A stretch of 64,000 bases of DNA. Source: Bugula neritina (Eukaryota > Animalia > Bryozoa). The stretch lies in NCBI GenBank assembly GCA_964035545.1, contig OZ037767.1:14760998-14824997 (forward strand). Reading direction: 5' to 3'. The notes under the pieces are model-generated. The model was given only the letters and a program-made list of their open reading frames with translations, was not told where the DNA came from and ran no database searches. This document shows, one piece after another, positions 1,227 through 14,296 of this stretch. Position 1 is the stretch's first letter. Each line of letters starts with the position of its first letter. The translations under genes were made by a program, and so were the position numbers.

Positions 1227-3416
1227 TCACTTAGGAGGGAATTCTGGGAAGAGGAACATCTTCCTGTAGTTGGTGAAAGTACATCTACTATCTGGAATAC
1301 AGGCTCCAGAGGGGTTCTCTTTGGTTCTTATGTCCGTCATTCCAATCTGCCTCACTCTCTGTTGAATCTTGAGAATACATTATTATATGATATATTTTAT
1401 GGTGTTACAAATATGGTATATATTATACGGTATAATATAATATAATATGTTACATGGTATAATATATGGTATATTAAATGGTTTATTATATGCCATATTA
1501 TATCATGGTATATTATATAGTATGCTATATGGTAGATTATATGCTATATTATATTACACAGTATATTATATATGATATACTATAGGCCATAGGGTATATC
1601 ATATTAAATAATATATCACATATATAATGCTACAGAACATAATACAATAACACTGCTTATGTATAGTTTATCATATAACACTAGTACTACTTACAATTTT
1701 AAACAGCTGCTCTATATCTCTGTGACAGCTGTGCTTATAGAATGTGGCAACTAAAACTCTGATAAACCAAGAGCCATGAGTTCCACTTCTCACTGCTTTG
1801 TAGGCTGCAACAGATAGACACATTGGGTCATGTAACTGGGCTGTGCTTGTGCATTTGGAACAGTGTGGGAGTTGTCTTCTATTGATCTAACTTCTCGACG
1901 GGATTTAAAATGTTTTTGACAAAAAGTAAAAAGAAGGAAGTGGGTTAAAACCTCTGTTTAAAATTCCGGATGAGTTATAACATTTATAGCTAAAAATACT
2001 CAAATCAAATGATGCTCAAAAACTATGATTTTTAAAAATTGCATATTTAGAACATATTCACTTTAGGCAAACTCTCCATATGAACCACGCTGAGAGTATT
2101 GTTAACAGATCCATGAGACTATTATGTACATATATACATGTAGAAGTGATGGTAGGGTTATTGGTATATTTAGTAATATAAAATATAATTGGAATATATT
2201 ACTATATATAAACAAAACACATTTAACGCACTTTCACTTGTGGCTTTCATTATAAAGAAATCATCTAAGTTGAGTGCCTCGAGTCCAGGTCCATCTACGG
2301 AAGGACCCCACATCTCTTCCTCTTCTTTCTGCCGCAATTGTTTAAGTGTGAGAGGCTGTTGGGCAGCAGAAGCAGCTGCTGGAATAGGATTGAGTAAGGG
2401 GACAGTTGAAGCATCTCCAAACTCTACTCGATCTGCAAACATGCAATAAACTGACCAACTGTTGGAAAAGAAAACCTGGTTTAAACAAATCAAAATACTA
2501 TAAAAATAAAAAAAGCAGTGAAGTAATATAAAACACAATTTTTTAAATTTGCTATAGCACTTATTCCACTGTTTGCAATTAGAATTGCTTTATCAACAGA
2601 ATAGACAAGCTGAATATATATCCACTTGAAAGTTTAAGTACTCAAAAACTAAACCTCAAACATCCTCTTTTGGGATTCAATAAAATCAAACCATAAAATC
2701 TAATCGCTACTGGTGTTGCAAATTAAATAGGATTGTATTCCCATTTAAACATTATACCGTGATTACCTCCTGAGCACGCCTGGATTATGATGACTTTTGG
2801 TTTCCCTTTCATAGCTGGAAAATTCTGAGGAGAAAGTAAATCTTTGATTTTTGCGAGATCAACAGGCCTAAAGTTCCGATCATAAAGATTATCACCTCTT
2901 GTCCCATGAGACATGAGTACTAAGAAGAAACTTTGGTACTTGTAGTGTCCTTGATGATGCGTTTCTTGTTCAATTTCTGAGTAGATTTCCTAAAACGTAC
3001 AAAAAAGCTTCTAGATAGATTCTACACTAGGTTAATTTATGCAATTGCAGTAGTGCTTTCTGTACTGTGACAGGCACCTAATAAATAAAAGTTTCCGACC
3101 ATATACTATAATTAACACCTAATAAATAAAAGTTTCCCACCATGTACTATAATTAACACCTAATAAATAAAAGTTTCCCACCATGTACTGTGATTATAGC
3201 ACCTAATTAATAAAAGTTTCCCACCTCAGCTGTAAGATCGCTCAGCTCCTCTTGTGTTTTCACCAAGTCATATCGAAGATGTTTGAATAAAAGTTTCAAA
3301 TTTTCATAGTCGACTTCTGAACCAAGTCTGGTGTTGATGAGTTTACCATCTTCATAGAACTTGTTGTTGTTGATGATCATTGCTCTACCTCTCACTGGGT
3401 CACTCATCTGATAGAT
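1227..3416 (-). CDS. Caspase (peptidase C14A) domain exons of the fusion gene
   Basis: [16 protein letters not shown]; R.GS..D (NTRLGSEVD); FFLVLMSHG; [14 protein letters not shown]; p10 DFFIMKAT...[12 protein letters not shown]...RKMFLFP. Five exons in frame. Confidence 0.92.

Positions 3417-14296: not shown

Follow-up and report, generated by a model that had tools for sequence, protein, structure and literature searches.

The window analysed here, a stretch of 64,000 nucleotides of Bugula neritina DNA (assembly GCA_964035545.1, contig OZ037767.1, positions 14,760,998 to 14,824,997), carries on its minus strand a gene in which LRRs, a Roc-COR region and a caspase are joined in one reading frame. 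The twelve exons of the model are:

14053..14296, minus strand: E1, cap exon of 80 residues with a YRH motif, preceding the LRRs; a 79-residue counterpart is present in Watersipora P0156 and B. neritina P0169
13808..13948, minus strand: E2, 141 nt, phase 2-2, two LRRs (exon check and Pfam)
7434..7574, minus strand: E3, 141 nt, phase 2-2, two LRRs (Pfam); 77% identity to E4
6709..6849, minus strand: E4, 141 nt, phase 2-2, two LRRs (exon check and Pfam)
4067..6069, minus strand: E5, last LRRs, Roc GTPase and COR, 667 residues, phase-1 donor (Pfam, AlphaFold, Foldseek)
3896..3982, minus strand: E6, linker exon 1, 28 residues, phase 1-1; a 27-residue exon lies in the same place in P0156 and P0008
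3591..3766, minus strand: E7, linker exon 2, 58 residues, phase 1-0; 38% identity to P0156
3225..3416, minus strand: E8, first part of the caspase large subunit with an S1-pocket Arg (Pfam Peptidase_C14, E 1e-6)
2767..2989, minus strand: E9, caspase large subunit with the catalytic His and Cys (Pfam E 3e-12; matches to caspase-1 and -3 in the PDB)
2232..2432, minus strand: E10, inter-subunit linker with Asp residues and start of the small subunit (exon check, family alignment)
1695..1804, minus strand: E11, caspase small subunit with the second S1 Arg and GSWFI (Pfam E 0.0035; 78% identity to the Watersipora P0008 exon)
1227..1367, minus strand: E12, caspase C-terminus and stop (43% identity to P0008, E 1.5e-10)

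In an exon-by-exon check all introns were GT-AG with agreeing donor and acceptor phases for the twelve exons (series 1-2-2-2-2-1-1-0-0-1-1-0, no mismatch), the split codons were sense codons, and the terminal TGA was the sole stop in the 3800 nt of the model. A random non-coding stretch of the window with the length of one of these exons would be free of stops in a given frame with a chance of 0.01-0.13, and the exons match Watersipora proteins in the same order and with the same boundaries, which together exclude chance. Pfam places LRRs in E2-E5 and Peptidase_C14 in E8, E9 and E11. The linker exon at 3982-3896 gave no significant similarity of its own in the sequence search, and its support therefore comes from its position, size and phase in homologues. 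The window gene was searched exon by exon, while the folds were modelled for E5 and, at full length, for a Watersipora homologue, in which E6 is helical and E7 disordered. The original prediction of twelve undisrupted exons holds with respect to frames, phases and splice sites, but the model is 5'-incomplete, since the exon at 14296 begins in phase 1 and has no start codon.

The DNA of the window is ~90% identical to the B. neritina contig VXIV02002612 (L002), which carries two tandem copies of the gene, one of them broken by two stops and a 4-base insertion (frameshift) in the Roc-COR exon. When window positions 1-14736 are compared with L002 385-6524 and 17514-27634, the 5' exons are like copy 2, and the 3' introns and the caspase are like copy 1. 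This mixed resemblance suggests that the tandem copies have undergone unequal crossover or gene conversion. Intron 2 of the window gene holds a mobile element:

8448..13671, plus strand: LTR retroelement, antisense to the gene and outside the protein; LTRs 99% identical

The element is 5.2 kb long with a 4-bp target duplication, and the site is empty in L002; judged from these features its insertion is recent. It encodes a gag zinc knuckle, an aspartyl protease and an integrase zinc finger, and as no reverse transcriptase match was obtained within 8448-13671 it is probably non-autonomous.

Two exons further upstream are candidates for the 5' end of the gene:

22730..22771, minus strand: candidate start-codon exon, 14 codons, phase-0 donor; ATG, frame and GTAAGT donor are conserved in B. 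neritina L002
21111..21552, minus strand: candidate proline-rich exon, 442 nt, phase 0 to phase 1; open in the window and in L002

The phase of the proline-rich exon fits the phase-1 acceptor at 14296, its frame is open in both the window and L002 despite a large in-frame length difference, and in L002 it lies ~2.2 kb upstream of the cap exon. Since the exon at 21552-21111 is also open as a threonine-rich, mucin-like frame from an inner AG, and both frames survive the length changes in L002, the proline-rich assignment is one that we infer. The two exons probably supply the missing start, which would give a full gene of about 14 coding exons and about 1427 residues, near the 1384-1419 residues of the full-length relatives. 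The start of the window gene appears proline-rich, unlike that of the Watersipora members P0009, P0156, P0161, P0041 and P0163, which begin with MG followed closely by Ser/Thr; such starts suggest N-myristoylation and membrane targeting of those members. A search of the window found no start exon of the myristoylation type near 14296. The ~5.4 kb between 14736 and 20110 are absent at the corresponding place in L002, have short inverted repeats at their edges, and are probably inserted mobile DNA.

With E5 as query, 98 proteins were found at E < 1e-30 (1.84 billion representatives scanned). Where a match is named, it comes from one of two bryozoans, Watersipora subatra or Bugula neritina; the taxon of many of the others is assumed. 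Eight Watersipora RefSeq models have LRRs, Roc-COR and the whole caspase in one chain and five more carry part of this arrangement, and the B. neritina database models likewise hold all domains in a single chain; these fusion models are predictions, made independently in the two genera. Homologue models that were mapped to their loci have identical exon boundaries from COR to the end of the caspase. Three mapped database models start with a phase-1 5' exon, the cap exon and a variable number of 141-nt LRR exons, and continue with a single LRR-Roc-COR exon that closes in phase 1, a pair of short linkers and caspase exons with the same boundaries. The 141-nt LRR exons, the two linker exons, an acidic motif and a QACSG caspase in five exons are the marks of the bryozoan family, which forms a clade of its own in the Roc-COR tree (LG+G4, support 100). 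Members stand in RefSeq/GenBank under the misleading names MFHAS1 homolog (many of those in RefSeq), CASP8 and CASP2. Measured against the two B. neritina copies, dN/dS is 0.06-0.08 for the caspase, 0.21 for Roc, 0.17 for COR and ~1 for the linker exons; on the caspase exons selection is purifying. The predicted fusion in one polypeptide is well supported by the homologue models with the same boundaries in two genera and by this selection.

The Roc-COR exon ends at the phase-1 donor at 4066, and the stop of the unspliced open reading frame (4061-4059) is located inside the intron. This is in line with the claims that E5 splices onward and has no true stop, and that two linker exons lead to a caspase in five exons with SHG at 2911-2903 and QACSG at 2782-2768. 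That the locus instead consists of two adjacent genes, an LRR-Roco and a separate caspase, or that the copy is silenced by the intronic retroelement, appears scarcely probable to us. The unspliced exon does meet a stop within a few bases and many database entries end there; these entries are, however, single-exon calls on short genomic contigs. A free caspase would have neither a start nor a prodomain, the phase-1 donor that follows the final Pro codon recurs in other species, and the intron downstream of E5 measures only 84 bp, so that a separate caspase promoter would have no room between the two exons. Two observations speak for two genes or a silent copy: one B. neritina copy is broken, and the protein searches and one metagenome scan yielded no transcript running from COR into the caspase. 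The short-contig matches were single exons bounded by introns.

Within E5, Pfam recognises Roc (E 0.002), COR-A (E 0.002) and COR-B (E 0.014) in that order, all under the curated cut-offs. Because these scores are weak, the assignment as a Roco relies on the motifs together with the match in fold. Modelled with AlphaFold (pLDDT 83.8), E5 has as its top Foldseek matches, over its full length, LRRK1, the C. tepidum LRR-Roc-COR protein, LRRK2 and RocCOR crystal structures, with E values of 8e-20 to about 1e-14 for the best Roco matches at only 12-15% identity to the solved Roco structures. On the basis of this model E5 has the Roc-COR fold and the protein is a Roco. Alignment with relatives gives the following GTPase motifs:

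5736..5759, minus strand: Roc G1 P-loop GxxxxGKT, intact
5592..5603, minus strand: Roc G3/switch II DFGA, with Ala in place of the DxxG glycine
5385..5396, minus strand: Roc G4 THxD, intact

The departure from DxxG in G3 lowers the status of the domain as a canonical GTPase, not the fold assignment. Gly occupies the switch-II position in 82 of 86 relatives (consensus DxGG), and the Ala of the window copy is also found in both B. neritina draft copies. In Ras the equivalent change, G60A, impairs switching. Conservation among Rocos is highest in the DxxG region, which makes contact with COR (PMC6337361), and for this reason the switch of the window copy may be altered. A stronger form of this idea, with the Roc crippled by the Gly to Ala change so that the copy is a nucleotide-insensitive scaffold or a sensor paired with a paralogue, seems to us very unlikely, as G1 and G4 are intact and Roc, at a dN/dS of 0.21, is under purifying selection. 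The occurrence of the Ala in three Bugula copies further indicates that it is tolerated and old.

Both the large and the small caspase subunits are complete, and each has PDB caspase matches. The catalytic His and Cys and the S1-pocket Arg, Gln and Arg for Asp (in E8, E9 and E11) are invariant in the family alignment. By these residues the Asp-specific active site is intact, and by its sequence and animal intron positions the caspase is of animal type. CED-3 and caspase-3 are best in the PDB ranking, with caspase-1, -4, -9 and -2 close behind at almost level scores that do not single out an initiator type. The small subunit shares a helix and a C-terminal YLFPG stretch with the caspase-4/-1/-2 types, which are activated by dimerisation. 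No death-fold match indicating a CARD/DED prodomain was obtained for any window exon or for the full-length bryozoan homologues, and none of CARD, DED, PYD or death domain was detected in the bryozoan fusion. NACHT and NB-ARC ATPases also gave no match, the nucleotide-binding domain being Roc. The inter-subunit linker is long and very variable between family members. An acidic SDxSD motif at 3716-3684 in E7, common to most bryozoan members and located in a disordered stretch of the Watersipora model, may be a self-cleavage or regulatory site.

Taken together we favour, on balance and by analogy with known systems, the reading that the protein is a cytoplasmic LRR-Roc-COR-caspase of a bryozoan multigene family of probable danger or innate-immune sensors, in which dimerisation gates an adaptor-free caspase. 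In the bacterial model Roco, GTP produces the monomer, while the protein with GDP bound or without nucleotide is a dimer (PMC5714945, PMC11052575). If the bryozoan protein behaves in the same way, GTP binding would hold the caspase off. The resting protein would then be a GTP-loaded monomer with an unpaired caspase; the LRRs would read a signal, a microbial molecule or a disturbed host protein, and this would bring Roc-COR into the GDP-bound or nucleotide-free state; dimerisation through COR would pair two caspase domains, and the paired caspases would cut themselves at the inter-subunit linker, probably at the acidic SDxSD linker as well, releasing active caspase for the cleavage of death substrates. 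Forced dimerisation activates caspases (as cited in PMC2575513), and a CARD/DED adaptor would be unnecessary because COR provides the proximity. The nucleotide-controlled dimerisation assumed by the original prediction accords with the bacterial cycle, but a simple scheme in which GTP turns the caspase on is not what this cycle implies, as GTP gives the monomer. The adaptor-free sensor-to-caspase receptor likewise stands as the best reading, with one chain and no death fold, and has to be qualified with respect to its precedents, the direction of the switch, the DFGA motif and the initiator class of the caspase.

The same fusion could be gated differently, which we consider somewhat unlikely: GTP might open the LRR-Roc hinge and so set the caspase free, or a standing dimer might act as a protease tripwire, the caspase being shut until an upstream or pathogen protease cuts the inter-subunit linker. 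In the bacterial Roco, GTP moves the hinge by a very large amount, and the resulting state has been termed active (PMC11052575). The slightly better caspase scores against CED-3 and caspase-3 also point in this direction, and in a constitutive dimer of the effector type COR would not be needed, which is a point against dimerisation gating. The small subunit, however, resembles the caspase-4/-1/-2 types in its helix and YLFPG stretch. The long and variable inter-subunit linker and the ~neutral rate of evolution of the COR-caspase linker would suit a tripwire, but rapid linker evolution fits a disordered tether equally well.

Within our preferred reading, dimerisation gating of an immune sensor, the proposed immune role rests on the expansion of the family, its tandem and broken copies, the variable number of LRR exons and the swapping of effectors in relatives. 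The family is spread over at least seven chromosome-scale contigs in Watersipora, and the window itself holds a second, upstream 5' half of a paralogue:

46777..50555, minus strand: 5' half of a paralogue; within the window neither Roc-COR nor caspase follows
50510..50555, minus strand: paralogue start exon with a myristoylation-like MG..S start (sequence comparison)
49716..49963, minus strand: paralogue cap exon, carrying 4 extra bases
49606-49466, 48110-47970 and 46917-46777, minus strand: paralogue LRR exons, phase 2-2, still open

The 4 extra bases put the cap exon into another frame than the start exon, and the half gene at 50555-46777 is probably a decaying paralogue. Its phase 2-2 LRR exons could, as far as phase goes, splice into the main gene. 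The idea that this cassette provides a clean alternative first half, in the manner of protocadherins, was weakened by the cap exon being out of frame and by the loss of consensus residues from its last LRR exon.

A function in tissue turnover, colony self/non-self recognition or non-lethal signalling instead of pathogen sensing, for instance in polypide regression, metamorphosis or contact between colonies, we regard as unlikely. Programmed degeneration is the means by which bryozoans recycle their zooids. In a small sample of only 30-60 codons, no diversifying selection was seen at exposed LRR positions (dN/dS 0.28), and algal Rocos respond also to non-immune stress (PMC11378527). These points would suit such a function, but the birth-and-death expansion, the tandem and broken copies and the effector swapping are typical of immune genes.

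The same architecture exists in amphioxus, where three Branchiostoma species and hybrids yielded at least 12 LRR-Roc-COR-caspases in a search with BRAFLDRAFT_67388. The same amphioxus core is also found with GT4 glycosyltransferase, Death, OTU or trypsin tails (P0197-P0239), and the bryozoan clade has caspase tails only. Amphioxus proteins such as BRAFLDRAFT_67388 / C3XQ16 share with the bryozoan protein the LRR-Roc-COR-caspase in one chain and five caspase intron positions. They differ in a Roc-COR of ~21% identity to that of the window, in LRR-Roc-COR in one exon as opposed to modular LRR exons, in a short linker without the acidic motif, and in QACRG in place of QACSG. Zhang et al. 2008 proposed amphioxus "LRRs-caspase" hybrids, presumably of this kind, as a direct link between pathogen recognition and apoptosis (PMC2575513), with no mention of Roc or a GTPase in the main text of that paper. 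Predicted bacterial proteins with LRR, AP-GTPase (Roc) and COR carry at least 24 effector tails, including caspase (Kaur et al. 2021, PMC8195603), and bacterial counter-invader systems have several paralogues per genome (PMC8195603). The domain order in these LRR-Roc-COR-caspases is the same, but they are prokaryotic and predicted only, and their Rocos are far off in the tree. The interchangeable tails of the amphioxus family closely mirror the bacterial systems of Kaur et al. 2021.

MFHAS1/MASL1-like proteins, LRRK1/2 and the C. tepidum Roco share the core and the fold but have no caspase, the LRRKs carrying a kinase. In domain layout the window protein departs from an MFHAS1 orthologue by its C-terminal caspase, and by this layout it is classed as a Roco and a caspase, neither an NLR nor MFHAS1. 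Invertebrate Rocos with CARD, Death or TIR tails have been described in Trichoplax (PMC4104024) and Aplysia (PMC9334734), and in brown algal ROCOs the LRR exons are shuffled and alternatively spliced (PMC11378527). In these proteins, too, a Roco core is tied to immune or death signalling. They either bring in partners via adaptor domains or are without an effector, whereas in the bryozoan protein the protease itself is fused. NLR inflammasomes, the Apaf-1 apoptosome and the PIDDosome combine a repeat sensor, a nucleotide switch and caspase activation by proximity. The logic is alike, but the bryozoan protein differs in using a Roc-COR GTPase, not a STAND ATPase, and in having sensor and caspase on one chain; by this analogy it is predicted to work like an inflammasome compressed into one chain.

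The literature searched, in which subscription papers were few, contained no paper on the bryozoan family and no experimental study of an animal Roco-caspase, and nothing in it recognised Roc-COR inside animal LRR-caspases. The statement that no characterised animal protein has such an architecture agrees with this search, but the architecture itself is present in amphioxus and was partly described in 2008. A search for prior families thus found the bryozoan family nowhere described, along with the amphioxus (2008) and bacterial (2021) precedents. The idea of a shortcut from LRR to caspase is therefore old, and the bryozoan family and the presence of Roc-COR in the animal versions are new to the literature searched.

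The origin of the fusion was addressed with Roc-COR and caspase trees (LG+G4), the latter built from database homologues. The bryozoan, the amphioxus and a third, eukaryote-like group form separate clades in the Roc-COR tree, and a joint bryozoan-amphioxus clade was not rejected (AU p = 0.09). The base of the caspase tree is without resolution. Bryozoans and amphioxus share caspase intron positions, which may simply be ancestral, and independent fusions in the two lineages are plausible from the sequences. The third group has Roc-COR-caspase without LRRs in intronless single open frames on megabase-scale ENA metagenome contigs, and one of its proteins has a weak CARD match ahead of the caspase. 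It includes:

L004 3001-7590: intronless Roc-COR-(CARD)-caspase
L018 10001-15874: intronless Roc-COR-(CARD)-caspase

Closest to the bryozoan clade as an outgroup, on a long branch, is the LRR-Roc-COR-CARD protein P0111. The LRR-Roc-COR-CARD protein in this place next to the bryozoan clade, encoded at L005 331-4560 (Logan SRR17902662), is a possible two-component forerunner of the fusion.

It is tempting to combine these observations into a wider reading, with single-chain Roco-gated caspase receptors, independent fusions and varied LRR exons, which we hold only tentatively and would not expect to be correct as a whole. According to it the expanded bryozoan family might fill the place that NLR inflammasomes have elsewhere, the fusion might have arisen separately in bryozoans, amphioxus and a third eukaryote, and LRR specificity might change by gain, loss and alternative use of the 141-nt phase 2-2 exons. 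If true, the output of a Roco could be read directly as protease activity. The effect of the Roco monomer-dimer cycle on a fused effector is still debated, for the Parkinson's protein LRRK2 included (PMC11052575, PMC6337361). A natural Roco with a caspase on its COR end would turn the cycle into a simple cleavage assay, in which the direction of the switch becomes directly testable. The family is also a pointer to a class of animal innate-immune receptors that has gone unstudied, a counterpart of the defence systems predicted in bacteria that database labels like "MFHAS1 homolog" and "CASP8" conceal.

Two further features of the minus strand were observed in the window. The region at ~33900-36700 resembles, by eye, a degraded non-LTR retroelement with reverse transcriptase- and endonuclease-like remnants and many stops. 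Upstream of the family cassette, from 58044 to ~55000, lies a spliced gene whose product has an RRM (Pfam RRM_1), Gly-rich stretches and RDPY/KDPY repeats.
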